Origin: Geosiphon pyriformis uo1
Lineage: Eukaryota; Fungi; Glomeromycota
Assembly (NCBI GenBank): GCA_016748015.1
Contig: JAAOMT010000676.1
Span: forward strand, 7,408-25,792
Length of the DNA: 18,385 nucleotides
Reading direction: 5' to 3'
Shown here: piece by piece, positions 1 through 18,385 of the stretch
Layout of the letters: every line of letters begins with the position of its first letter
How positions within the stretch are numbered: position 1 is the stretch's first letter
Made by a program: the position numbers and the translations under genes
Notes under the pieces: generated by a model
The model's input: the letters and a program-made list of their open reading frames with translations, nothing else
What the model was told of the DNA's origin: nothing
Database searches by the model: none

Positions 1-398
1 TTCTTTATTTTTATTTTCTTTATTTTATTTTTTTTTTTTTTTTGATTTTGTTGTTGTATACTAATTGATTAAAAGATTAAGCACTGAGTTATTGACGTCA
101 AGAATAGCCTGATAAAAGACCCAGAAATAAGAGTAGGATTTTATATATTATCGGATAGCTTACCAGAAGGGCATGACTGCCAGACTAAATTTGGCCACCA
201 CACTGAGAAAGAAATTAAGAAAACTCTTGAAAAGATACATCTACTATCAACACTATTGAATCTCTGTCCATTATACAAAGGGCTCCATCAAAACCTTCAG
301 ATACAACACTTGCAGAACCTCATCCACAGAAGTAGCTTTTGAGCACCAAGTTATGAGTTTGTTATTTAATTCAACAGCAGAAATAATCACCTGTAACA
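1..398 (+). repeat. LTR (3' portion; a 3' LTR or solo LTR) nested inside the gag-like region of a related minus-strand element
   Basis: Colinear similarity to the reverse complement of ~1277-1690. Shared blocks: T-rich tract, GATTAAAA, TAAAAGACC, ATAGCTTA, TGGCCA..CTGAGAAA, AATCTCTGTC.ATTATACAAA, CAAAACCTTCAGATA, AGCACCAAGTTA..AGTTTGTTATTT. Ends AATCACCTGTAACA, matching AATTACCTATAACA in the other copy. No PBS follows. Confidence 0.8.
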
Positions 399-1904: not shown

Positions 1905-2073
1905 GAGATTCCTCAATTCCTCAATTTTTGACACCAGGAATCTTGAAATTTCTGGAATCTTGCAATTCCTTTTGAGAAAAATTTTGGAATTTTGGAATTC
2001 TGCGATTCCTTGTACAAGAATCCTGAAATTTCTGGAATTCTGCAATTTTTCTTAAAAAGAATCTTGGAATTCC
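1905..2073. repeat. Degenerate array of GGAATTCC-like 8-9-mers with an 80-bp higher-order duplication
   Basis: Many GGAAT(T/C) and AATTCC variants. CAGGAATCTTGAAATTTCTGGAATCTTGCAATT (1935-1967) recurs as CAAGAATCCTGAAATTTCTGGAATTCTGCAATT (2015-2047). Confidence 0.75.
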
Positions 2074-3594
2074 ATATTTACTACAGCTACCTCTAATTGG
2101 CTAATTTATGTGTTAATATACTTCTTATATTTTTATGAGTAACATTCTTTTATAGTTTTTAATATGTTAAATAGTAGTATTTAAATCTGTTAAAGTATGT
2201 AGATAAACTTTTTTGATTAATTTATTCTTTAAATTAATAATAGTTTAATCCAAATTTTAAAAATTAGAGTAATAAGTATTTGTTTTAAGCTAATAAATTC
2301 TTTTAAAAAATTTATTAAACTTTTTAATATAAGTTATAATAGATTCTAATAGTTTTTATTTGATGTTTTAAAAGTAGTTTTAAAAAATAATTAAAGTATT
2401 ATTGTTTATAAACTATTTAAAAAAAGCAGTTTTAAAAGTTGACTATTCTGCAAAAAAAGCAGCCAAGTTTTTGAATTATTTGCCAAAATATTTTTAAAAA
2501 AATAAAAAATTGCTCTTAATATTCTTATTATATTTTATTTATTTGTGTTTTTTGCTTTAGTAACTTAGTCAAGCCACTCTTAAAAACTGATTTTAATGTT
2601 TTTTTTAGAGAATTTAAAAATTTTTGCAATATAAATAGTCATTTTTTTATTTTTATTATTGTCTATAGTTTTTTTTTTTTTGTTTTTTTTTTCAATAGAT
2701 TCAGAAATGTCTTTTTTGTAAGCTAATATTTTTAAATATTTACTTTGGTTTTCTGCTAAATAATTAGGAAGATTAGTATTAGTTTAAAATTAGTTCTAAC
2801 TATTAGATTAAATTTTTGATAAAGTTTTCTGGTCTTAAAAATTAGTTAAAAAATGAATTAAATATTTGTACTTAAGTAAACAAAGTCGAGAAAAATGTAA
2901 TTAAAAATAGTAATTTAAAATTGGTTTTTTATTTAAGTGTTTATAAATATTAAAAGATTTGTTTTTAATGTATTAAAAATTGTGTAAACTAGTTAAGTGT
3001 TTTTTTTTGTTTTTGTTAATTTTAGATTCAAATTTAAGTTTAAGAACAAATTTTAAATCAACAAAATATTTTTTTTTATAAAACTTAATAATATTATAAT
3101 TAAGTTTTTTAAAATAAATAGTGTAAATATCAATACTAATAACTTTTGAATCTTTGTTTAAATAATAAATTAAGTTTTTAAGAAATTTTTTTTTAATTTT
3201 TATAATATTATTGTTTCCAAAAAAATAATTATTAATTTAATTTTCAATATATTAAAAAAATTTTTTTTAAAAGCTGTAATTTTATTTTGGTTTTTAAATT
3301 ATTGTTTATAGTAAATATAAATTAATTAATAATACTTTAAAGTTATTATATCTGATATAATTACTACTTTAATTTAATTGTTGCTGTATTATTTTTTAGA
3401 AAACATCAAATATTACTGAAAATTTTTCTACTTTTTTCTAAATATTGTTAATATTATTTTGCTGGTAATTTTGTTATTAATAAAACTTAATAAATTTTCA
3501 ATAAATTAATTTTTTTTTCAAAGTATTTTTTTATATTTTAAACTATTTATGCTGTTAGACTTATAAAAAAATAACCAATTTTATATTAATTATT

Positions 3595-3770
3595 TGTATA
3601 ATTACTTTACAGTAAAAATTAATTTTTTAACAAAAAAATCTTATCTGTAAATTTTTTAAAATATGTATAATTACTTTGTTGTAAAAGTTAACTCTTTTAT
3701 AAAAAATCCTAACTATAAACTACTTAATAATATAAAAAAAAATAAATTAAAAAAAATAAAAATAAAAAAA
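3595..3770 (+). repeat. Putative 3' end of a non-LTR retroelement: duplicated ~49-bp 3'UTR motif followed by an A-rich tail
   Basis: TGTATAATTACTTT occurs exactly at 3595 and 3664 (69-bp period) and similarity continues ~35 bp further. A-rich tail at ~3734-3770. Confidence 0.5.
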
Positions 3771-3910
3771 TATATCAAAAAAGTTATTTTAGATTCAAAT
3801 TTAGAAGTTTTTAATAATTACTATAATTAATAATTAATCAATATAAAATAATTAATTTTAAAACAAAAATATTTAAGAAAAAATCAAAAACTTTTTGTTT
3901 TCTTAATTTT

Positions 3911-4992
3911 ATGATTATAACCAAAGCAAAAAGTAAAAAAGCTGTAAATATTACTTTTTCTATAGTAACTAATAAAATTTCAACATAAAAAAGTCTTTTT
4001 GTTATTAAAACAGCTAAACATAATGTTTTGGTTACATTTTTTTAAAAAAATATTAATGAAAAGCTGTTTTTAGTAACTATTAAAACATTTTTTTCATTTT
4101 TAACTGGTTTTTTACTAGTTAAAGTTTTTTTAAAGAGATATACTTAAATTAATTCTAGTGTTGTTTTTATTTTCTTTAAGAGCCCAAAAATTTTTAATAA
4201 TAAACCAGTTAATAAGCTGGTCTTTTTTTTTATAGTTTTTACATTTAATGTTATTAGTACTATTTTTTTTAATAAAATAGTCAAAAAGACTAAAGATTCA
4301 AAAAAGTGAAAACAATTATTCATTTCTGCTATTGTTACACAAACTTCTTTGTGATTTTTAATAAGATCTTAAATAAGATCTTTGTTGTATTAATTAGTTT
4401 ATCATTCAAAATAAGCCAAAATTAATCATTAATTATGTTGTTAAATATAAAGTCTTTAGTAAATTTTTACCAGTTTTGAAAAAAAACAACAGTTTTCTAT
4501 TAAGTTACTTGTTCTTGAAAACTGGACTGATCAAATAGAAACTGAATTATTATTATTTTTTCTGGTTTTTGGTGTTATTATTAATGGTGCTTGAGAAACT
4601 ATTACTAGTTATCAAAGATTTACTAAGTAAATAATTTTTACTCTAATATTTAATACTATTTTTAAGATTAAATTGGCTCATATTAAGGCTGTTTTTTAGT
4701 TTATACATGGTTTTTTGAATATAAAATTTGTTTTTAAAGACAATATAAAGTTTTTTTATATAGAATTTGCTTTCCAAAGTTTTTAAATACTAGGTTTTTA
4801 ATTAAGTTTACAAGTTCTGTTTGTTTGGCCACTCTTAAAATTACCAAGTTTTTGGTGGTTTTTGAATTTGGTTTTTTTTTTGCTGTTGTTGCATTGTATA
4901 ATGTATTATTAAGTATGTTTACTACTAATATTAAGATAACTCTTAGTGTTTTTGGTATTGTTTTTTATGTTATGTTGAAGTTTGTTGATTTT
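3911..4992 (+). pseudogene. Decayed ORF1-like region of a LINE-type non-LTR retrotransposon, 3'-truncated
   Basis: ATG at 3911 (MIITKAKSKKAVNITFSIVTNKIST*...), then readable patches: KSPKIFNNKPVNKLVF, VLENWTDQIETE, FKIKLAHIKAVF*FIHGFL, LATLKITKFLVVFEFG, IKITLSVFGIV. The LINE ORF1 assignment rests on recalled similarity to Glomeromycotina repeat proteins and is unverified. Confidence 0.5.
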
Positions 4993-5374
4993 GATAATAT
5001 ATAATTGTTTACTTTAAAAAATTATATACTGCTGTATTTGTTCTCAATTACTGGTTAATTTTAGTGAACAAAAATAATATTTGGATTCTTTTTTTTATGA
5101 ATTAAAAAGAGATAATTTTGTTTCAAAATAAGTTTAAAACCAAGTTGGTCAATTTTTTTTTGGCTGTATTGTTTTTGAGATTAATAATATAATCTTTTAA
5201 GTTGATAGCTAAATGTGTTTTATTTTTTGTTTTCCAAATTTTGGTTATTATTCCCAATTTGCTCTAATTATATTTAAATCTTAAATTGACTTAAACTTTA
5301 CAGTTGTCAAAACTAATGTACTGAAAAAATAACATATTTGAAGAGAAACTTCTGGTTGTTGGTATTGTTTTAGA

Positions 5375-5907
5375 TGTTGTTATAAATAAACTTGATAGTA
5401 TATAGTGATAACATTTGGTGCTTAAAATTTGGGTTTTTGGGGAGTTTTTGATGGTTTTTTTTCAGTAAACTTGTTTAGTGTATTAGTATTATTAGTCTCT
5501 GAAGGTTTTTTTAATTAATATGAATTTACTTATAAAGTTTTTTGGTTATAAGACACAAAGAAATATTTTGTGGTGTTGTAACTTCTTGTATGTGAATGTA
5601 AATTATTTTCTCTGAGCTAACAAGCAGTCATTAGGGTTTGATAGTATTTTTTTACTCTTCTGATAAGCTACCAAGATAATGTTAATATCTAATCTTAAGA
5701 GAAGCTTTCTTTTTTTACTAGACTATTACAAAGTTTATTTTCAAACAGTCAATTTTTTTATGTTGCCACTTTACAAAAGAGAATAAAAAAAAATAAAAAA
5801 AAATAAAAAAATAAAAAAAATTAAAATAAGAAATAAGAAATAAATATTCTGTTAATAGCCATAATTAAAAACTATTGTGTCAACAAGTTAAGTAGTAGAT
5901 AATAACA
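5375..5907 (-). mobile_element. Solo LTR (533 bp) with 4-bp target-site duplication TAGA
   Basis: Bounded by TGTTGTTAT...ATAATAACA (8/9 inverted match), with TAGA at 5371-5374 and 5908-5911. Shares TTGGTGCTTA, TCTGAAGGTTTT, CTGATAAGCTA, an A-rich tract and AATA.CCAT.AT.AA.A.CTATTGT with the 1277-1761 LTR. Confidence 0.8.
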
Positions 5908-6008
5908 TAGATTTGAAAAATTGAAGAGATATTTTATTGATATAATTTCATTTTGGTTGATAGCAACTATTCTTGAAGAGAAAAATATTTAATAATTATG
6001 ACTTGCAA

Positions 6009-6053
6009 GTCTAATTAACTCTGAGAGTCTAATTAACTCCTAAGAATCTAATT
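6009..6053. repeat. Short tandem repeat, 18-19-bp unit GTCTAATTAACTC(T/CT)(G/A)AGA x2.4
   Basis: Directly visible: gtctaattaactctgaga / gtctaattaactcctaaga / atctaatt. Confidence 0.7.
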
Positions 6054-8230
6054 TTTTTTCTTTCTAATTTCTATAATTATTCATTTTTATACATTTTTTT
6101 GTTCTACAGAATTGCTTTTTAATTGTTTTGTTTTTGCTAACTATTATTTTACTATTTCTGTTATAACTTTGTTCTTCTACATTATTACTAGTTATCTTAT
6201 GTTTCAATTAGTTATTTTGTGCTATAATATATTATCGAGTTTTGTATTATGTTATTCTGAATTATTACACATATTCTGTGTATTTTCACATTATTTTGTG
6301 TTATTTTATGTCATCATGTTTTTGGTCACATTTTCTCTATAACTTTAGATTGGTTTTTCTATTCAGATAACAATATTAAAAAATAAATTATCTAACTATG
6401 GACTGTAAAATTCTTTTGTCTTTCTCTTCTAAGGCTCTCAAAGTATTTAAACCATATTTTATAAGTAATATTTCTTATATTAAAGCTTCTGCTTTTTCAG
6501 ATTTTTCTGAGTTTTTTTTTAGTGGTTTTTATTTTTTTTTTGTAATTGTTAATGATTTTTTGATTTTTTTTTAGCTGATATCTTTGAAATTCAATTTGGT
6601 TAAATTGTTAATTCTGATTAGGTCTATTATTAAGCCTGTTAATGCATTAGTTATAATGTTTGAATATTTTATTAAAGATAATTTTATATTAAACAGTGTT
6701 TTTAGTCTTAAGATTAATAAACTTATGATTTATTTGAGTTTTTTTTAGCAAGTTTATTAGTAAGTTGAGAAAAAAAATAGTTTCTTTAAAAAAAAAGTGC
6801 TGCATATAAGATATTAATATGTTTAATAATTCAGAACATTTAATTAACATAAATAATAATATATTTTCTAATTTGATTTCTTTTTAGAAATATAAATCTG
6901 TTAGGATTAAAACTAATCTCTTAAAAACAGCCAAATAATTAGTTGAATTTATTTTTTGTAGTGTTATTTTGTTTAATATTATTCAAAAAATGTTGTCTTT
7001 AGATAAATTTTCTTTTATTGTATTAATATAGTATAGTCTAAACTGGTTTAAGTAGTTAATTACATGTAAAAAACATATAAACTATATTTAATACTAGAAT
7101 TTTTAATTTGTTTTTAATTTCTAAACAGTAGTTGGGCTTTGTTTATTAAATTTTAATAAAAAAATATTTAAGAATTTTTATGTTTTTAGGATAAGTTTTT
7201 ATTGAAATTAATTTATAGAAAAGATATTTAATAAAAATTAATTTTAACTAAGATATATTTTTTTTAAAAAAAGTTCTTCTTTTATACAATTTATTATAGT
7301 ACTATTTTATAATCTAACACTTTTTTTTTCTTAATATTTTGGTAAATTAAAAATATATTTCATTAAATTACAAATTATTTCTGTAAATTATAAATTATTT
7401 TGGTAAACTGTTAAATAATAATTATAATAATTTAATTGATAATTTGAAATAATAATATAATATTAATTAATAATAAATATTATAAAAATAATTTTATATT
7501 AATTAATATCTTAAATTTCAACTGATAATACTAATTAACTTAGTAATTTAATTAATTTATAAGTTGTTTTATAATTATTTTGTCAGTTAATTTACTAATA
7601 AGTATTAGTTTAATATTTATTTATTCTGTTTTGGTATTAGTATATATTATTATTATTAGTTTATTCTAATTAAAACAGTTTTACTAAAAAAATTAAAGAT
7701 ATTTAAATTTTTTTTATTAAATAAAAAAATAGTAGCAAGTATTTTATTTTTAGTAATTATAGTTAAAAAAATCATATTAGAAGTAATTTGGTTGTTGTTA
7801 AGAGAAAAAAAATTGGTAGATTTAATTATAGCTTTTTTTTCAAAAGTATAATATTAAAATTCTGAGTTTTGTAAAAACCAAGATAAACAGCTTGGTTAAA
7901 ATATCTATTTAATAGTACTTAAAATAGTAAATTACTGTAATTTATACTCATAATAATATAAATATAAATTAAAATTGATTTTTTTTGTTTTTTTTTTTTT
8001 TTTATTATAATTGATAATTTAAGATCTTAAATTAATAAATACTAAGACAAAGACTACATTATTATTTAAGAATATTAATAATAATTTTGTAATAATTAAG
8101 ATAAATATTAGAGTTGTTAATACTAAGAAAATAAATATTAATATCTTATTAATTATATATATTTTGATTGTACTTAATATTAATTTTCTTAATATTAATT
8201 AAATATTTTTTTTAGCAATTTCTAATAATA

Positions 8231-8270
8231 TGTTCTAATTTTTAACAATATATTCTAATTTTTAACAATA
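8231..8270. repeat. 20-bp tandem duplication
   Basis: tgttctaatttttaacaata / tattctaatttttaacaata. Confidence 0.7.
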
Positions 8271-8528
8271 GTAATAGTTATGAAGATTTTGTTTTATAAT
8301 TCTTTTTATTTTTAATAATAATATTATTATTAATACTATAGACTGCTGTTATTTTTTTAGTATTGTAAAAACTAATATGTTTTTAAATTTTTAATAAAAA
8401 ATTCTTAGTTAATTTTTTACTTAATTAAATAAGCTTTATATTAATATTAAAAATTTTATTTATAATCAAATTAACAATTTGGGTATGATTAACTTTTTGT
8501 TTAACCAATTTAAAATTATAAATAAGTA

Positions 8529-8581
8529 TTAGGGTTAGGATCAAGATTAGGGTTAAGATCAGATATAGAGGGTTGGGTTAG
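8529..8581 (+). repeat. Degenerate interstitial telomeric repeat tract (TTAGGG)n
   Basis: In-phase hexamers TTAGGG TTAGGA TCAAGA TTAGGG TTAAGA TCAGAT ATAGAG, then GG TTGGG TTAG. Deviations are mostly G>A, matching the local mutation bias. Confidence 0.75.
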
Positions 8582-11345
8582 CATCATAAAACAAAACTAA
8601 TCATGTGCTAGAATCTGTGACAATGGCCAATGAGATAAAAATCACATGGCTAGACCAAGGATAAAATAATTTAACCAGCTGTCACCAAGTCAAGCCAAAT
8701 CATGCAAACCAATTGGAATCCAACACCAGTGAACACTGAAAAGTAGGTTCAGCCAGTTTTTGGCGATTAAAGTCCTTCTGGCTCTATTAACAATATTGAA
8801 AACACTACTACCACAGATAACTATAGCTACTAAGGAGTTGGCATGATCCGAAAATGAAGGAGAAATGACATTATGAATGACTTTACATATAAGAGGCCTT
8901 TTTGGTAAATTAGGAATCTTAACAATAATACTAAAAAAATCTCTTTTTCCATGAAAACCAAGAAGTCAAGGCCTCTTAACCCAAGTATTTTTGTTAAGTT
9001 GAAAGTTAACCACAGACAAAGGATAGCCTCTAGTCAGCAACCAAGCTTTAAATTCCTTAATATGAACTCAGTAACTGGAAAAATCCAAATTATTTCGAAT
9101 ATGATAAATATTTTCACTCTGAATCCAGTTCATAACATATTTTCTAGGATAAAAAGTCTGAAGATCAGTATATATATGAAGATTACATGGTTTGTCATAA
9201 GATTGGACCAAAAATTTAGTAAGATTATCAGACCAGAAAACCGAAATATTCAAATCTAAAAATATAATATTATAGTCATTATTATTAGTGCATTCCAAAA
9301 TAAACATAGAAGGAACAGCAAAAGACTGGTAATACTATACCCAGGCATTAATATCAAATTTATGAGGTTCATAAATAACGATAATATCATCTAAATAATA
9401 ACGAACAATAGTGGACCCAAAAGTATTAACCATAGTCATAACAATTTTGTGTTCAATAGAAGCACAGAATAAATTCACAATAACGGGAGCAGCTGAAGTA
9501 CCTATTGTCAGTTCTTTGTGCTAGTAATAGAATGAATCTTCATAAAGAACAAAGCTATTCTCAAGAATAAGCATCATAAGTTTAACTTCAAAGGTCAACC
9601 AAAGATTCTCAAAATTTGAGTGATCAGATAAAAAAAATTTCAGCCAAGCCCAAATGCATTGATAAAATGTACGAATTTCAATATTGGTATACATATTTTT
9701 AATGTCAAATGTAGTAACAGTAACATAGCCATGATAATAATTCGAAATAAGTTTAACAAAACTCATAGAATTATTGAAGACTGTTGGACTTTTTTAATGT
9801 AAGATTGCCAATATTTGGCTAACTAATGTGAAGCAGTAGACATAATCCAAAAATGATTAAGAGTAATGGAATGAAGAACACAAGGGTTTTTGTGTAATTT
9901 CCATAATCTATAAATTTCAAGAAAACGTAATTCAGAATTATGTAAAGAAAAAAATATTTTTCACAAGTATTTATGAGTATTTTTATGTTCCCTTAAGTCA
10001 GTGCTCATATAAAAATCAAATATATGATTCAAGAGCAATTTAGAACAGTGCAAAACATCAGACACATCACAAAGCTTAAAAACTGAAGTGTCAAAAAGTA
10101 GCTTAAGCATTTTAGTGTTATAATGAGAATAATTACAAATAGTGAGATTCATGTTTTTATTTGATAGAACAACAATCAAGTCATGATTTATTAAAAATAA
10201 TAAAACATTATTAACACATTCAGAGATATTAAAAATACTATTTCTATGATCCTTAAGTACATTGAAATTATTTAAAATGTAGTCAGATGCAAAGAGTAAA
10301 TGCTGATTGAAAATTAAGAGGCTTTCTCTTTTCCTTTCAAAGATTTTACTATAGGCTTTGAGGATTTGTTTTCTGATGTCTGACCACGTTTAATAGGTTT
10401 TAACAAGAAAGGGTTTTGAAGTAAGTTGAAAGTTCGAATCTAACTTCAAGAAATTTATAACAAAAAAGAGAATAATCACAAAAGAAATATTGTGAACCAA
10501 TACCTTCATTGATTTTTTGGCTTTGAGTGGTTGTTTAACTGTTGTTTTTGAGGCCTTTTTTTTCCCTTTTAATCACCTTGTTTTGCATTTTTCACTTTTT
10601 TGTTTGGGAGATTTTTCTTGGCTGGAGATGGGTGAACTTTACATTTTGGGGAAGGTTTTGATACTGGAATCTACAGAAACAATCTTATTAGAAAAATATT
10701 TTTTCAAAACAGGCTTGTGTAGAGTAGAACTAACCACAGTAGAACCAATGACCAAGTTTTTTAAAGCTTAATGAGTTTTAATGAATGTTTTAAACTCCTT
10801 AATTTCTTTATCAAAAATTCTCAGTAAACTACTCTTAGCTTTATCAGAAACCAAGTTATCAGTATGAACTTTACTGATTAAATTGGCAACATCCAAACAA
10901 ACTTTTGAGGGAGACTTATTAATGAGAGCATTATACTTGGCAATTTTTGCCAATAGCAGATTTTCACAAGAATGCTTTAAAGCCACACAAACTTCACCAA
11001 ACGTATTATCAATTATAAGTAAGTCATCAGAAAGAAATTGAGAAAGATCATAAAGAGAAGTAGGTAAAAAAAATTTTGGGTCACAGTTTGAATTAGCAAT
11101 AATTTTACATTTCAGATCATCTATCTTATGAAATAGAAAAAGAACATAATTTTTTTGCTTTAAAATTTAAGGAAATGACATATTATTAAGATTGGAAGAA
11201 CCAATCTTGAGTGCAAGCTAGTTAGCAAGCTTTTGAACAGCAACGAATTTCCTAATGTTCATTAGGGGGATGTCAATGTCTATGTTGTTAGAAGAAATAG
11301 TAGATTGAGAAGTAGATTAAGACATGTTTGATAAAAGGTTAGGGT
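8582..11345 (-). mobile_element. Endonuclease-deficient Penelope-like retroelement (Coprina/Athena-type architecture), decayed
   Basis: Penelope-type RT frame with no GIY-YIG domain, a short 3' UTR, and a 3' end abutting telomeric repeats. The 5' boundary is approximate (11345-11450). Confidence 0.8.
8690..11325 (-). pseudogene. Penelope-like reverse transcriptase with long N-terminal extension (~870 codons, many stops, one frameshift near 9785)
   Basis: ATG 11325 is in frame with listed ORFs 10768-10986 and 9961-10179. After one frameshift the frame runs through ORFs 9521-9766 and 9068-9307. Motifs in order: VHNIS..FLKLDSNF; LIVVLSNKNMNL (cf. PADK); EIYRLWKLHKNP; FDIKNMYTNI (A); IGTSAAPVIVNLF (B); YYLDDII (C, ~9386-9397); FLDLNI (E); YDKPCNLHIY; RGYP. 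The C-terminal end is approximate. Confidence 0.88.
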
Positions 11346-11499
11346 TTTTGGAAACAAGTATAAGATAAAAGTGCTCAAGTAAAGCAAATGGTTGTCTGCA
11401 CAGAAAATTATTTTTAAAGAGTGTTAATCTAAGTTCGAAAGTCGATGCACTACAACCACTCTACAAGTAATGCTTATATACTTGCAATCAAACATGAAA

Positions 11500-14400
11500 A
11501 TGGGCAATTATGGCAAATCTGTTATGGATTTTCTAACTATGTTATTGTAAGAACTCTTTTCACAAACCTCATTACTGAATTTTGAAATGGTAATATTAGT
11601 AGTAATAAGTATTGAATCAAAAAGATCCTGAATTTCATCAATTACCTTTGACTTATATGATGAAAGAACTGGAGCTATAGGACAATATTCAGAATTATCT
11701 AACTTCCTAGCTATTACTTCTTGATTATTAAAGCCAGCTTCACAATATAGGTTGCAATCAATCCAATATGTTTTTTTCTATACTTGATGTCTTTTAGAAC
11801 CTACACAAATTGTACTACTCTTAATAGTATAACCACACCAACTACTCATTACTGCATTAATAAATTTTATTGTAGTATTGAGATTGGGCAATCTTTTAGC
11901 TCTGGTCTTAAAACCAAAGAGTAACAATACATCTTCTCAAATTTTAACAATTTTTTCCCATGATTGCTCGAAAGTCTTAGCCATATCATTACCAGAAAGA
12001 ATATTTATATCATCTATATCTCTAAAACCTATTGATTGGACAAGATTATGTACTGCTTCTTATTGTTTTGCTGAATAAAATTTATGCAAATTGACTGAAG
12101 ATGGATCCATAGATTCATGTGAATTTTTTCATTGCATTTTTTCTTTGATTTTTAGATTTTCTATAGCTTTTGTTGCATTGAAACCTTGTCTTCTAAAATA
12201 TGCCAGCTTTCTAAAATGTTGTAAAAATTCAGAATTATTGAATTTTTTTACAAAATCTATATTACAAAGCTTAATCCAATTATCATTATTTATACTCCAG
12301 TTTTGAATATCATCTTTGCCACCAATATTACCTAAAGCATATGTTCTCCATAAATAATAACATTGTAAAGTCATGTTATCAGCAAAAAAACATATAAGAT
12401 TTTGCTTAAAAATTTCAGCTTTATTGAGACTAATATCTGAAGCATTTGCTATTGATTCTGTATCCAAGCTTTTATATTTTTCTTAATATTCTTAATAGTA
12501 TGAGAAATTTCATTTTTGTTAACTTTTTCAGTATCTTCTGCCAAAATTAATTCAAGAGTTGTTCCAGTACTAGCAATAAGACTACAAAGAATCTCAGAAA
12601 AATATTTGGCCAATAAGCGTCTTTCATATTCGACCTTAATATAAGTCTATGGCTGGAGATAAATCAAGTATATAACAGTCATTAATTTTATTCCATTTAC
12701 AATGTTCTTTTATAACAGTTGACAAGTCCCCAGGTCTCAGAACAAAAAGTTCAGCATGAATGAGATCACAATTCAGTTCTTTGAAAATGCCAGTTTTTTT
12801 ATTATTATAGAGAGAAATAATATGATATGGACAATTGCAAACTCAATAAAACATTTGTGCAAAAGCTTTAGCATATACTCTTGTATTAATATTACTTATT
12901 TCTATAACTGCATCAAAATGATTGGAAATTTCAAAAAAGATGCCAGCTTCTACAATACTTGTATAAACCACACAATCAAGACTACTCCAAGTAGTATTAA
13001 TATCGGCAAAGTCATCTTGCCATTGCTTTCCATCCATTTGGCCAAAATAAATTCATGATAAAATGTGTGAGCCATCTGGTTTTTGTAATTTAGAAGCTTA
13101 GTTTGCCAAAGCTTGTGCTTTTTTGCATGAGATCATTAAAAAAGCAACTCATTTACCTTTCTGAAGCATCTTAAGACTCCTATGTATAGCTTCTGATTCT
13201 TTATTTAAATCATAAAGAATTTTAATAGTCTCATCTTTACATGGCTTATATTTGTTATATCTCCATCTCGATATTGTTTTAAAAAGTTTAAAGTCAATTT
13301 GTTTGCAATTGTATCCATAGAAATAACATGAACAGCTGATTTTAATAAATTCCACATAGCATTTTCAAATTTATGTGCATGAACTCTACTAGACATTTGA
13401 TGTATAATAGTATTATTTTTGTCTAAGATAACTACATAAAAATGCCTTCCATAGAAATTAAGATAATGGGTACTTTCAACTTGGACAATAATAACGTATA
13501 GCTAAATTACCCTTATTTTCCTGATAATGGCATATATAAAGTTCTGAATTTTGCAATATTTCAACTCTAGCTTTAGTCTTATTGTTAAAAGTTTTACGAT
13601 ATGAAATCCAATTAAAACAAGGCAAATTTGCTCTATTTTTGGCTAAAAAATCAAGAATTTCTCTTAGTGTTTTTGTTTTGTTACTAGCAACAAATGAGCA
13701 AATAAGAGTTGTAGTGAGATTCTCACTTAAGAAATCAGGGTAAGCTTTTGGTGCATCTTTCATTTTCTTTACATTAATGATTTTTTCAGATAATTCAACA
13801 AGTGGGCGTGGGTGTTTTACAGCATTGAGTAATCTTTTAATTAATCCCCACTTAGGCTTTTCTTTTGACTCAACTTTGTTGGATACTTTATTGAAACTAA
13901 GGCCCTTGTAATCTGGTTTGTATTGTTTTTGGCAATAACACTTAAGTATAAAATACCCATTTTTTCGAATAAATCCATAGAGTTGATTCTTATCATATTT
14001 AATATCACATATAGGGCATTCTTTAACAGATTGTGCTTCAAAGTTGATGAACCCCTTCTCAGTTCTTCCAATTTGGAGCCACCTATATTTTGCAATAACT
14101 AAATTGGCTTCCTCAACCAAGATATTTTCATCATTGATAGGTTGAGATTCTTGTTTTACTGGCTTCTCTGGAAAAAAGATTCATGGCCAGATTTCAGAAT
14201 AATTCTCTTTAGGTTGAACTAAATAATCCTCCAGCTTTTGAAATCCATTTTAGACTGAAGAGATTGTGAGTCTTTTAATTCTACTTTCTTTTGCCAATCC
14301 AAGTAACCAAAGATTGAAATGTTTTTTGGGAAGACCAATATCAATGAACTTTGAATAAGATTTCCCAACTAATTTAATAACTTTTTCTGTAAAACCCTTA

Positions 14401-15011
14401 AGTTTTCTATAATCCACAAATTGGGCCTGAAGATAAATAATATGCCAACTACATTTATTGGCATTCGATGAACTTGCTAATGCAAAAGAATTTAAGAAAG
14501 GTATACAGTCTGGTATAAGGCTTAATGTATCTGCATAAGTGACTAAAATTCGAGACATTAAATCCTCATGAGTAATTTTTTCACTATCTAGAAAAGAAAG
14601 TTTAGAATCAGAGGGATTAGGCTTTTGTCTTGCATCAATATCAATTATTAAATGAAGAGGCTGATTTCTATCAATACATTTATGAGTGTTAGGCATTCCA
14701 TAAACTTTGGTAGGATGATCAATCACTGTATAACCTTTTCCTGCCATCCGAATTATATATTGAGAATAAATCTCTTCTGATCAATATGCCTCTAAAAGTG
14801 CCGTATTGTTTCTATTAGCAGAGCTGGCACGACCATTTGATGCAAGCCAATATTTATAATATGTATGTCCTCTATGGCTAGGTTTATAATCAAGATCAGT
14901 TAAACTCGTGAGAAGCTTTTTTGCTTTATTATATTCAGCCAATTTTTGATTTAGGCACTGTTGTTGTAACGATTCACATAGATGTTTTTTTGCCTCACTA
15001 GACAAATTCAT
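11500..15011 (-). pseudogene. AEP (PrimPol-like) primase + Zn finger + herpes UL9-like SF2 origin-binding helicase fusion, ~1150 codons, disrupted
   Basis: ORFs 14781-15011, 14250-14747 and 13476-14120 share one frame, separated only by point stops. AEP motifs: LIIDID, KCSWHII, FIDIGL..HFNLWL. Zn finger: CPIC..(Y/H)...LKCYC. Helicase: SFVASNKTK (decayed Walker A), ISYRKTF (Ia), IVQVESTH, VVILDK (Walker B, E>K), MDTIAN (III), VVYTSIVEAGIFFE..HFD (V), AQMFY* (VI). A readable C-terminal region continues to ~11500, and the 3' end is approximate. Confidence 0.85.
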
Positions 15012-15196
15012 TTTATTGATTTGTATATGCGTGTTGTTTGATCTGACAAAAAGTATATATAATAATATTTTGTAACTATAATAACTAGTAGATAAATCTT
15101 TAAAATAAAAATTAATTATTCTCTATTCTTTTTCGGAATGCACTTTGCCAAGAAAAAATATAAATTTGATTCACAAGATTATTATATACAATTACG

Positions 15197-15481
15197 ATGG
15201 TATTTTATCATTGCCCATATATCCATAGAACTGGAAAAATCTGTGGTCAAAGTAGTTATAGATCAGAAGAATGCTATGTTCATTGGAAATCTCCAGTACG
15301 TACTCCTTGTAGAGATTGTGATAAGCTAAATAGTTCTATACATAATGCATGCTATAAACATGTAGGCAAATATCAAAGTAGAGAGAATTATCGCAGAAAA
15401 AAGTGGGATGAATTACATGCAAAAATTGTTATGCTTGAGAATCATATACCTGACTTACCCAATTCTAGACATGAAGTATAA
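15197..15481 (+). CDS. Small Cys/His-rich protein with two CCCH-type Zn-finger-like motifs and a basic helical tail (94 aa)
   Basis: C-x9-C-x9-C-x2-H (CPYIHRTGKIC...CYVH) and C-x2-C-x10-C-x2-H (CRDC...CYKH). The ORF is intact. Confidence 0.7.
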   Translation: MVFYHCPYIHRTGKICGQSSYRSEECYVHWKSPVRTPCRDCDKLNSSIHNACYKHVGKYQSRENYRRKKWDELHAKIVMLENHIPDLPNSRHEV

Positions 15482-15489
15482 TCATATAC

Positions 15490-15660
15490 TTAGCATATAT
15501 CAATAATTTTTTGGATGACCTCTTTGAGTAAAGCTATATCCTCTTTGATCTTATTGATATTTTCAGCAATCTTATTACATAGAGCTATGGATTCTATAAT
15601 CTTATTTTGAGAAAAATGATATTTTGTGCCTGATTGATCTCGTGTCTTACTCATATCCAT
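15490..15660 (-). CDS. 56-aa predicted coiled-coil microprotein (not in the supplied ORF track)
   Basis: MDMSKTRDQSGTKYHFSQNKIIESIALCNKIAENINKIKEDIALLKEVIQKIIDIC*. Heptad I/L periodicity. It ends 8 bp from the stop of the convergent Zn-finger ORF. Confidence 0.5.
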   Translation of the reverse strand: MDMSKTRDQSGTKYHFSQNKIIESIALCNKIAENINKIKEDIALLKEVIQKIIDIC

Positions 15661-15800
15661 TTTCCGATAGAATTACATTAACCACAACCCATTCAATTTT
15701 TGGGTATAGATATACCGACTCACAAATAATTAATTTTCGATTTGAAAGAATAAGTAGGTTAATGTATAATCACAATTTACTTATCTAATATATTATCAAT

Positions 15801-16995
15801 ATGACCATGATAACTGCCCAAAAAACCCGAAACCCCAAAACTAATAGCTTTACCTCCATTTTGGATCAGATCCTAAATAAATATAACCTATTAACTGAAT
15901 CAAACCCACTTCAATTACATGCTCATGCCAATAAGCTTGGTACTATGCTACCAGATTGGAAGGCTCATAAAGATGTGAAAGAGGCTCTCCATCGGCGCCT
16001 ATTCAAAGAAAATCAAATAGAAGCTCTTGTACCAGACAAAAGGGGGAAAAAGCTTACTGTCAAGAAAAGAGCTCAATATTGTGCAAAAACTGGAGATGTA
16101 TCAGATATTTGGTTACATGTCTTAAACTTAGCTGTCCCAAAAAATAATACAGATAAGGCGATTGTGGCAGCCAGTTCCTGTCTTTTGCAATTTTGTAAAG
16201 AATTAGCAGAAGCTGGAGTTGATCCCGAGCAAATTAATACATATGCCAAATTACCAGATATTACTCGAGCTTCTAATCAGTCGACCTAAAATGCCTAAAC
16301 ACTTCTCCTTAGAAGAAGAGCTTAAAAGACTTCAGAATATCCATACCACTGAGATCCTCACTCTACAAAATCTTGCAGATGTAATCATGATGTTGAGCAT
16401 GAGACTTGCTGAAGCAACTACTCTTCGTATTATCTATTATGAGCCTGACAAATCAAATCCTCTGGAATGGTATAATCCCGATTACTTTTGGTATTGTACT
16501 GGGTATATTAAAAATAAAGAAGAAGCAAAAAACAATTCTGAGCCTCGACCATTTCTATCCATGGAAAAGAATCCAAAGCGTGCAAAAGAATTGCTTACCT
16601 GGATTCAAAATACAATAGCGATTGGAAAGTTGCGTGATCCTGTCTATAGTATTAATGGAAAACGTAGTACAGGTATATTTAGTAAATTTTTAAAGCCATA
16701 TGGCATTACAACTAAAAGATTAAGAAAAATCGGAGGTAAACATGCTTCTAGAGTTCATGGTGGTCAAAATCCAACTTCACAACATCTCACTTTCCTCAGC
16801 AGGATTGCAATAAGGCATAGGATGGATCGTCATAATCCTGGAATGTATTATGCCGAGGGTGATACTTCCAATTCTGATCTTGACTCAGATCTAGAGCCTG
16901 AACCCGAAACTCAAGCTTTTATAACTAAACCAATTGATAAAAAGACTTCTACATCTGAAATTAAGGATATCTATGACTTATATGGGAATATCTAG
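15801..16995 (+). pseudogene. Tyrosine-recombinase-fold protein, telomere resolvase/protelomerase-like, split by one frameshift near 16280
   Basis: ORF 15801-16289 (helical N-terminus) overlaps ORF 16219-16995. Candidate catalytic residues: R in MRLAE (16402), K in TGYIKNK (16510), KxxR in KRLRKIG (16714-16725), H in AIRH (16816), Y in GMYY (16846-16851). Acidic tail. Confidence 0.7.
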
Positions 16996-17181
16996 ATTAG
17001 TGATATAATTAATTATTAATTGTCAGATGCGATATGTTTACTAACCACGCTTTTTTGCTTTCACCACATTCACAGTAAAATCTTTATTATCATTGCCGGA
17101 GGTAATCACTTTGTAGCTAAACAATTCAGAGTTAGACCCAGACCCAGATGAAGACAAGGATGAAGATGCAACATCATTTAA

Positions 17182-17544
17182 AAATCTCTTTTTTCTTTTA
17201 GCCTTAGATGGTATGGAGACAATAACAAGCCCACAGGGGACTTTTCGAGTCATAACACCAGCCCCACTAAAAATGACCCATCTAGGTCTGATTTATCAAT
17301 AGAGGAGATCACGAATACAATTAAGAAAATTCTTTCAGATGTTGAAGATAAGTCGGGTTCTTCTGATTCTTGCTTACAGCAAAATAAAAGCAAGAAAAAT
17401 AAGGTCAAGTATTTCATCATAGAATCGGAATCAGATACTAACTCTGATAATTCTGAATCAAGCACTTCTTCATCTACTTCGGGATCAGAAGATACACATG
17501 TATATAAGAGTGTGCAATGTCGCAAAGTAAAAAAGAAAAATTAA
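17182..17544 (+). other. Stop-free Ser/Asp/Lys-rich low-complexity frame without an ATG (gene fragment or terminal exon)
   Basis: Reads ...RWYGDNNKPTGDFSSHNTSPTKNDPSRSDLSIEEITNTIKKILSDVEDK...ESESDTNSDNSESSTSSSTSGSEDTHVYKSVQCRKVKKKN*. A pyrimidine tract plus AG at ~17185-17201 could be a splice acceptor. Confidence 0.4.
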
Positions 17545-17810
17545 TTATAACCACATCGTAACCGCGAAACCACATCACGTTATAATGGGCCGATGTCATG
17601 TGTTTTAAATCCGCGAATCAGAGATCAGCATAGAAGTTCATGGAACATGCCAATAAAAAACCCTTGATGGGTCATAATCTATATATTTATTGCTGAGCAA
17701 TGACTCGAAGAGTCTACACGAAAATCTTTATTTAACCAGTGATTATCTGATATATTTACATTTTAAAACCGCTAACTCTATATAATTATTTTTGCTATAT
17801 AAGTATCGAA

Positions 17811-17869
17811 TTATATCCCATCGGGTAGTGGATCCTCTGCTTTCAACCCACGTCTGGCACGCGATAAAT
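17811..17869 (-). CDS. Predicted last exon of the TET/JBP-like gene (DLSRARRGLKAEDPLPDGI*)
   Basis: 102-bp AT-rich intron 17870-17971 with GTAAGT donor, GCTAA branch-like site and TTTACAG acceptor. A phase-1 splice gives an open, GC-richer exon ending in TAA at 17811-17813. Confidence 0.65.
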
Positions 17870-17971
17870 CTGTAAAGAGTAACGATTATAAATAGCGATT
17901 TTTTAGCAATACATATAATACAATAAAAGGATTAATACGAACGTATTAGCCCATGTGAAATAATTACTTAC

Positions 17972-18385
17972 CAATATTTCCTCGTCTTTTATCGCAAGAT
18001 CTTTCTGGTATCTTGGTTTGACTTTTTTTCGGTTGGGAGAGTGTGATTCGGTTATTCAGATCTCGTACATCATTGAGATCTTGTTGAGAAATCATAGAAA
18101 CAAGCGTCCCACGTGCGTCCCTCTCGACCCCATCCTTGAGATCGTTGTAAACCGAGGAAAAGTCACGCAAATTATGAAAGAACGAAGCATGAACGAAATA
18201 CACTATGCTATGCCGAATTCCTTTCGTTACGGGAAAATTGCCGTGGAGTAGGAGACGTGAAGAAAATGCTACAATCTGGCCTAGCCTTAGCGGAATTACG
18301 ATCTGAAGTTGTGGAAAACAAAGTTCGCCCCCCTCGAAATCGCCCAATGCGACCAAGCAACATAAACTATTCGGCTCGTCGTGCT
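17972..18385 (-). CDS. TET/JBP-like 2OG-Fe(II) dioxygenase, penultimate exon (5' part lies beyond the window)
   Basis: The frame is open to the window edge: HDEPNSLCCLVALGDFEGGELCFPQLQIVIPLRLGQIVAFSSRLLLHGNFPVTKGIRHSIVYFVH. It shows GG.L, the distal His and the RxSxVxF 2OG-binding motif of the DSBH fold. The HxD motif is expected just outside the window. Ends at donor G|GTAAGT (17972/17971). Confidence 0.75.

Follow-up and report, generated by a model that had tools for sequence, protein, structure and literature searches.

Several described systems combine a tyrosine recombinase (YR) fold with a mobile or linear replicon. The protelomerases, or telomere resolvases (TelA, TelK/TelN and ResT), carry a YR-type catalytic domain after a helical N-terminal domain, and N15-type replicons unite such a YR-fold enzyme with a site that is palindromic and with an initiator that is a multifunctional primase-helicase. 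Cryptons in the broad sense and Starships are DNA elements with a YR as their sole recognisable recombinase; Cryptons are defined by an R-H-R-Y tetrad, terminal direct repeats of 4-6 bp and no terminal inverted repeats (PMC3212892). In the Glomeromycota, the literature searched describes Glomhopper, a CryptonA with a DUF3504 domain (PMC13465315), and mentions ‘helicase-primase’ genes only as transposable element-like sequences that were filtered out, while about two thirds of the Rhizophagus genome repeats are unclassified (PMC11075540). The present analysis concerns a broken recombinase gene in an 18,385-nucleotide stretch of Geosiphon pyriformis (contig JAAOMT010000676.1, positions 7,408 to 25,792; here called the window), which an earlier note, made from the sequence alone, had read as encoding a telomere resolvase rather than an integrase. 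The open reading frames (ORFs) concerned are most likely a dead recombinase copy of a Glomeromycota mobile element that comprises a replication initiator (Rep), a Cys-rich protein and a divergent YR. A description of such a YR-Rep element family was not found in the literature searched, and the safest reading is that the element is previously uncatalogued. The copy in the window is a fossil.

The recombinase gene and its family

The gene is split over two ORFs, which were searched and folded separately, with the intact paralogue P0001 (404 amino acids, 87% identical) as a full-length stand-in. By tblastn, ORF1 aligns to amino acids 1-158 of the intact Diversispora YR. Identity to the window is 99% for P0004, a deposited gene model, and locus L001 corresponds to window positions 6291-18385 at 100%. 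The pieces and the candidate catalytic codons, with residue numbers of P0001, are as follows:

15801-16289, plus strand: ORF1, frame 0, 162 amino acids; all-helical N-terminal domain and first piece of the pseudogene
16219-16995, plus strand: ORF2, frame +1, adjacent to the frame of ORF1
16288-16995, plus strand: catalytic domain and second piece of the pseudogene, in the ORF2 frame (AlphaFold2 model and Foldseek)
16275-16280, plus strand: 35-nt deletion that shifts the frame, after about 16277 (alignment with the intact Diversispora copy L002)
16402-16404, plus strand: codon of Arg I (MRLAE; R211), Arg in 30/30 family members
16510-16512, plus strand: codon of the beta-hairpin Lys (TGYIKNK; K247), conserved in 27/28 homologues; in the model it follows strand 2 of the hairpin
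16714-16725, plus strand: KRLR, with Lys at the position of the HxxR His (16714-16716) and Arg II (16723-16725)
16816-16818 to 16849-16851, plus strand: His codon to the codon of the presumed nucleophile Tyr, a stretch that is disordered in both AlphaFold2 models

The pattern R...K...KxxR...H...Y with the motif TGYIKNK, on which the earlier note was built, is present in ORF2, where the residue spacings are 36, 71, 31 and 11. The frameshift that it had placed near 16280 proved to be the 35-nt deletion. To call this the only obvious lesion was slightly too generous, since the near-invariant Pro after the first Arg is changed to Leu and the near-invariant Ser of YSWYC to Phe. The identical 35-nt deletion was found in the second Geosiphon copy (L004), and thus both copies are dead and the duplication postdates the lesion.

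A word search with ORF2 returned 118 proteins, and every named one belonged to the Glomeromycota. Homologues occur in Dentiscutata, Gigaspora, Cetraspora, Diversispora, Entrophospora, Rhizophagus, Ambispora, Acaulospora and Geosiphon, and intact full-length ones, of 370-440 amino acids, are abundant. An exhaustive profile search collected 470 proteins. Taxonomy was taken from the best 150 of the 470, all of them strong matches, and the members looked up among these were either Glomeromycota proteins or unnamed proteins from metagenomes and read assemblies; the host range found so far, among these best 150 matches, would be that of the arbuscular mycorrhizal fungi. Homologues sit on Mb-scale Rhizophagus scaffolds, and are therefore nuclear, as the earlier note had supposed.

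The alignment of 30 full-length homologues revealed that Arg II (R318) is conserved in 29/30 members and the Tyr (Y360) in 27/29. The residue three positions before Arg II is Lys in 26 members, Arg in two and Glu in two, so the observation that Lys stands where integrases have the His of HxxR, as in TelK, extends to most of the family. The His before the Tyr is more variable (18 His, 10 Gln and 1 Asn among the 30). Two further histidines, H324 and H329, are invariant, and R348 is conserved in at least 90% of the homologues. Two of the six motif positions therefore vary within the family, namely the KxxR Lys and the His, and the proposed catalytic set R/K/R/H/Y held at 90% or more for R, K, R and Y only. 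This conservation across 30 homologues shows that the active-site motif is real and family-wide rather than a chance pattern. Among five intact copies the dN/dS ratio was 0.17-0.31, which denotes purifying selection and implies that the protein is functional in the family. The intact recombinase genes lack introns.

Copies within a genome are 95-98% identical and lie in unrelated flanks; all copies at hand are assembled, chromosomally integrated ones. The protein of Geosiphon, a member of the Archaeosporales, is 83-87% identical to the Dentiscutata and unnamed copies (P0001-P0003) and about 50% identical to the Rhizophagus copies, and the synonymous divergence (dS) between the Diversispora and Gigaspora copies is 0.41. 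Such similarity between distantly related genera suggests, from the sequence comparison, a horizontal spread of the element among Glomeromycota.

One member bears the automatic UniRef name ‘Tyr recombinase domain-containing protein’. Another, P0039 of Gigaspora margarita, is a plain family member that is publicly named ‘highly derived D5-like helicase-primase: PROVISIONAL’, a name probably transferred from the neighbouring Rep gene. In the gene models P0009 and P0050 the upstream Cys-rich ORF is fused to the recombinase, which could reflect either faulty gene prediction or genuine splicing.

Predicted fold and relation to protelomerases and integrases

Sequence and profile searches did not connect the family with any described one. 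Pfam, PHROGs and NCBIfam gave no match for the window ORFs and the homologues, and phmmer and hmmsearch gave none among the PDB sequences. The Pfam YR families (Phage_integrase and relatives) were absent at E<=1 from the window ORFs and from the 30 homologues, and DUF3504 was found in 0/30 members at the same threshold. Outside the family, nothing was retrieved by tblastn of P0001 against phages and plasmids or by motif scans of the IMG/VR and GTDB genomes.

The AlphaFold model of P0001 (predicted local distance difference test, pLDDT, 75) consists of a helical N-terminal domain, with helices over residues 14-169, and an alpha/beta catalytic domain; the C-terminal tail with the His and the Tyr is disordered. 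In the Foldseek comparison with the PDB, the first 42 matches were all YRs or protelomerases, with TelA in first place (E 1.6e-2, probability 1.0), then Cre (2.4e-2), after it Tn1549 Int and lambda Int, and TelK at rank 39. In BFVD, a collection of predicted viral structures, the top match was a protein of Emiliania huxleyi virus 86 (EhV-86) annotated with a ResT/TelK catalytic domain (1.6e-2), and assorted integrases came next. The catalytic domain of the window copy itself (16288-16992) was modelled by AlphaFold2 with a pLDDT of 71, and its first 28 PDB matches were likewise YRs or protelomerases, with E-values of 3.2e-2 for Tn1549 Int, 5.7e-2 for lambda Int and 0.11 for TelA. The geometry of the superpositions ranked differently: TM-scores relative to the query (TMq) and root-mean-square deviations (rmsd) were, respectively, 0.46 and 6.5 for TelK, 0.39 and 7.0 for TelA, and 0.39 and 5.9 for ResT (TMt 0.50), compared with 0.27-0.34 and 8.7-13.6 for the integrases and Cre.

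On these models the protein has the tyrosine-recombinase fold, although the E-values are only about 1e-2, and the margins of the protelomerases over Cre, lambda Int and Tn1549 Int are insignificant. With Foldseek, then, the YR fold was upheld for both models, while on the preference for a protelomerase over an integrase the E-values and the TM-scores pointed different ways.

The profiles compared with hhalign represented seven phage protelomerases from annotated genomes and six lambda-type integrases. The family matched the protelomerases with a probability of 1.3% (0.3% for the catalytic domain alone) and the lambda-type integrases with 0.2%, whereas the protelomerases and the lambda-type integrases matched each other at 53% (E 1.3e-4), an alignment in which the catalytic residues all coincide. 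Because the models point to the YR fold and the profile comparison links the family to neither group, we place it as an orphan branch of this fold with a mild, consistent structural lean to the protelomerases. The evidence does not justify filing it as a protelomerase.

This lean is the structural part of the case for a telomere resolvase, in which the element would be a linear episome and the YR would cut 6 bp apart at the centre of a palindrome and reseal the strands into hairpin ends, a eukaryotic analogue of the N15 module of TelN, telRL and RepA. We consider such a role unlikely, though it accounts for a number of observations. TelA is the best full-length match in the PDB and the EhV-86 protein the best in BFVD, the three protelomerases have the best TM-scores of the catalytic domain, and the KxxR motif is that of TelK, in which the protelomerase alignment also shows Lys instead of the HxxR His. 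Arg II and the His are spaced 31 residues apart in the family, close to the 28 of TelA (PMC3558466) and the 33 of TelK and longer than the 22 of lambda Int (H333; the HxxR His of lambda Int is H308). On the other hand, the Pfam profile ResT-TelK_cat was found in 0/30 members at E<=1, as compared with 1.9e-22 for the TelK control, and the hhalign probability of 1.3% falls far below that joining protelomerases to lambda integrases. The E-values of the catalytic domain are led by integrases, the difference between TelA and Cre in the full-length search is too small to separate them, and the His, invariant in the seven phage protelomerases, is Gln in 10/30 members, a third of the family. The muzzle and stirrup domains of protelomerases are also absent. 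The choice of resolvase over integrase made in the earlier note is accordingly favoured by the top full-length match and the catalytic-domain geometry, and not supported by the E-values and the profile comparisons.

With lambda Int, Tn1549 Int and Cre, the family shares the predicted fold and the top E-values of the catalytic domain, but the match to lambda-type integrases by hhalign is negligible, Lys stands in place of His, and an arm-binding domain is lacking. It differs in a similar way from Cryptons and Starships: Lys, Arg or Glu occupies the His position of the R-H-R-Y tetrad, so that the Crypton signature is not present, and GCR1_C, DUF3504 and DUF3435 are missing. The similarity to these elements lies in a DNA element with a YR as its sole recognisable recombinase, encoded by a multi-copy intronless gene. 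Glomhopper, too, is a multi-copy and often decayed YR element of Glomeromycota hosts, but it belongs to another protein family and has not been described with a Rep gene.

The Lys at the HxxR position is also the common state in type IB topoisomerases (PMC3558466), and human and poxvirus topoisomerase I appeared among the Foldseek matches. A protein of this type, or a non-catalytic domesticated host protein, is nevertheless very improbable: the topoisomerase matches are weak (E 1.6-3.8, TMq 0.22-0.28) and well below those to YRs, and the genes lack introns, occur in multiple copies beside Rep and have often decayed, which is the behaviour of a mobile element. The pattern that a host protein would lead one to expect, one conserved orthologue per genome in a syntenic position and with introns like those of the host, is not seen.

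Rep, the element ends and the role of the recombinase

In every long locus, in four genera, the YR is adjoined by a Rep of about 1300 amino acids and a Cys/His-rich ORF of about 100 amino acids. The corresponding features of the window are:

11502-15038, minus strand: decayed Rep gene in several frames (tblastn pieces), with a part resembling an archaeo-eukaryotic primase (AEP) at about 14136-15038, then a UL9/CyRepA-like superfamily 2 helicase
15197-15481, plus strand: Cys/His-rich ORF, 70% identical to the Diversispora ORF and present in all loci
15752-15782, plus strand: conserved inverted iteron halves AAGTAG...CTACTT around a 19-bp core, 20 bp upstream of the ATG; the second half reads TTACTT in the window

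The N-terminal 300 amino acids of Rep contain, by our own reading and with no Pfam match, an hhDhD motif like that of AEP primases. The remainder of the intact Diversispora Rep matched the Pfam family Herpes_ori_bp (1.6e-19), and this part also matched the herpes origin-binding protein in the PDB (8e-8) and NCBIfam CyRepA1, a cyanobacterial plasmid initiator (1.3e-46). The likeness to UL9 and CyRepA1, which extends to UL9-type structures, concerns this neighbouring Rep and not the recombinase. In the Diversispora Rep locus L002 (3325-6604 and 8329-9090), primase and helicase segments are repeated at 98-100% and give an apparent coding run of about 2500 amino acids. The gene order is Rep on the minus strand with the Cys-rich ORF and YR on the plus strand in Geosiphon, Diversispora and Gigaspora, and Rep and YR on the plus strand with the Cys-rich ORF on the minus strand in Rhizophagus. 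A single Flp-like inversion was considered for the Rhizophagus order and rejected, as Rep and the Cys-rich ORF were each flipped in place. Metagenome contigs of a divergent subfamily (L019-L021) had neither Rep nor palindromes.

The ends of the element were recognised from the comparison of copies. In seven copies of five lineages, the outer edge of a perfect palindrome is the exact point at which homology on the Rep side sets in:

L005 4522-4555 and L008 3119-3152; L017 2090-2127 and L018 4358-4395: perfect 34-bp palindromes of two Gigaspora subfamilies
L003 3424-3457 and L006 3597-3630: perfect 34-bp palindromes of two Rhizophagus copies
L009 639-720: perfect 82-bp palindrome of Diversispora

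The arms vary by lineage, but the symmetry of every site extends through the central 8 bp; four lineages have ATATATAT at the centre, and L006 has another palindromic octamer that is not a TA repeat. Shuffling five loci with their composition preserved, in 100 shuffles, gave no palindrome with arms of at least 15 nt. A terminal palindrome is absent from the window. The palindrome arms of Gigaspora and Diversispora consist of an iteron (core CCTACTT) in inverted copies, and more direct copies of it follow inside the element, every 21-27 bp or so. All genera (Geosiphon, Diversispora, Gigaspora and Rhizophagus) also have an inverted pair of the iteron core 40-65 bp ahead of the YR start codon.

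Both ends could be traced in the Gigaspora copy L005, which has inverted terminal repeats of 900 bp, the second of them 8.5 kb beyond the YR, and whose outer edges are both flanked by the 5-bp direct repeat ACATC. A DDE transposase was considered for the stretch between the YR and this right repeat and rejected, since what lies there is a nested retroelement, with fragments of gag and rve. A DDE transposase, Cas1 or other integrase was likewise not found in the conserved part of the element. In the other copies, conserved genes stay collinear over at least 9 kb past the YR, and no right-hand repeat was met within 10 kb; since no right end was reached over this distance, complete elements are probably longer than 17 kb.

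Taken together, the predicted YR fold, the conserved motif, the purifying selection, the linkage to Rep, the multiple copies in unrelated flanks and the palindrome at the element end lead us to favour somewhat a conventional role, in which the protein is the site-specific recombinase that belongs to a new YR element with a Rep. The YR would bind iteron-type sites as a dimer and cut with its Tyr (Y360), and it would carry out conservative site-specific recombination, either for integration and excision by way of a circular form, for the resolution of replication products, or for both. Rep would presumably bind the iterons, and the palindrome with a TA centre would more probably serve as the Rep origin and mark the element end than form hairpins. 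The 34-bp palindromic site can be read as a YR site of the standard 13-8-13 geometry (PMC3212892), which is a point in common with lambda Int, Tn1549 Int and Cre. The 5-bp repeat around L005, the one complete copy, may be set beside the short direct repeats reported for Cryptons and Starships (PMC3212892, PMC13465315), with which it agrees. The large Rep, the iteron-rich ends and the 900-bp inverted terminal repeats of this one copy set the element apart from those; Cryptons have no terminal inverted repeats.

Several results weigh against this role. The entire palindrome, its outer arm included, is identical between independent insertions, which implies that no crossover took place at its centre during integration, and the YR-element model leaves the chemistry of integration unexplained. 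The 5-bp direct repeat is known from one copy only, and copies other than L005 show no right-hand repeat within the 10 kb searched. The left flanks vary between copies (ACATC and CCACT), which resembles a target-site duplication more closely than a constant att core. The element is known from integrated, assembled copies only. Finally, the best TM-scores of the catalytic domain belong to protelomerases.

The ends bear on the telomere resolvase as well. The terminal sites are perfectly symmetric through the central 8 bp in five lineages, including L006 with its non-TA centre, and a primase-helicase Rep is linked to the gene. In N15 and phiHAP-1 the protelomerase gene adjoins its palindrome, and in phiHAP-1 it also lies near the RepA gene. 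However, all copies seen are integrated in nuclear chromosomes with a full palindrome of fixed length at the host junction, which neither resolution nor the opening of a hairpin would predict. The idea of hairpin ends put forward in the earlier note thus gained a perfect palindrome at the element end and lost ground by finding it whole, and not halved, at the integrated boundaries. The palindrome is, moreover, far from the YR gene and beside Rep, where a UL9-type origin would look alike; the N15-type replicons are bacterial and episomal, about 165 bp separate their tel site from telN, which it precedes, and their proteins are unrelated in sequence to those described here. The herpesvirus origin oriS has inverted UL9 boxes around an AT-rich centre, and the putative binding sites of the fungal element, likewise inverted around an AT-rich centre, resemble it. 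By this analogy with oriS and oriL, an origin for the UL9-like Rep would be an equally good explanation of the palindrome. The fuller version of the hairpin scenario, a virus-like or plasmid-like element of fungal nuclei that replicates as a linear DNA with hairpin ends, carries a UL9-like primase-helicase with a protelomerase-like YR that works on the terminal palindrome, and left the chromosomal copies as integrated or fossil forms, we hold to be rather unlikely.

The arrangement of sites further allows for a housekeeping recombinase of the Flp, Cre or Xer kind, which would serve an episomal replicon by resolving multimers or inverting a segment in support of Rep-driven replication, insertion being left to an unknown nuclease or to host repair. 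The terminal iteron motif recurs inverted upstream of the YR in all genera and so gives each element two sites, Rhizophagus has both Rep and the Cys-rich ORF in the orientation opposite to that of the other genera, and a 5-bp duplication that varies between insertions fits a staggered cut better than a YR crossover. Against this, the Rhizophagus order is not one inversion of the segment between both sites, and the search for DDE, Cas1 or another integrase in the conserved part of the element supplied no enzyme for the insertion. We judge this role to be quite unlikely.

In its unusual architecture, which combines a YR with an initiator of plasmid or virus type and iteron-built palindromic ends, the element stands between YR transposons, integrative plasmids and small DNA viruses. 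If the YR is indeed an integrase, the family would represent a new superfamily of self-replicating eukaryotic YR elements; if hairpins are made after all, telomere resolvases would be extended to a fungal nuclear element and a new tool enzyme would be at hand.

Neighbouring genes and other features

Genes 0.4-5 kb downstream of the YR may belong to the full element. The Gigaspora locus L017 encodes there a protein with a RING finger (9561-10457), a small ORF that has a PD-(D/E)xK-like D...EAK motif (12420-12914) and a coiled-coil/Cys-motif protein (13551-15688), the last of which is conserved in Gigaspora, Rhizophagus and Diversispora loci. Genes in this downstream region were also seen at L003 (14397-16327), L006 (16309-18312) and L009 (14598-16359). 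The search for capsid and packaging genes gave only a weak match to Pox_A32, a packaging ATPase, in one Diversispora locus (L002, 20966-21245); this gene lies 10 kb from the recombinase and could hint at a virus-like element nearby. Rhizophagus (L006, 12135-12682) and Gigaspora (L018, 18177-18874) have Crinkler-domain genes no more than a few kb from the recombinase.

The window copy is part of a larger duplication, and the remaining features of the window are listed with it:

7636-17002, no strand assigned: block duplicated elsewhere in the Geosiphon genome, 94.9% identical to L004 over 9.4 kb
17964-18356, minus strand: ORF with a weak match to Tet_JBP (Tet/JBP 2-oxoglutarate-Fe dioxygenase; 2.4e-4, below the cut-off), about 1 kb beyond the recombinase
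2000-8500: low-complexity A/T repeats with a GC content of 12-23%, against about 30% in the rest of the window
322-371 and 1305-1354: inverted repeat pair of 50 nt, 76% complementary, about 930 bp apart and of normal composition

Positions 7636 and 17002 were considered as ends of the element and rejected, as they fall, in L004, at a gap of N and at a junction with adapter sequence. In that locus (around 11197 and 1726-1825), a run of N on one side and a common sequencing-library adapter on the other are assembly artefacts. The inverted pair at 322-371 and 1305-1354 could be the ends of a small, unrelated element with terminal inverted repeats.

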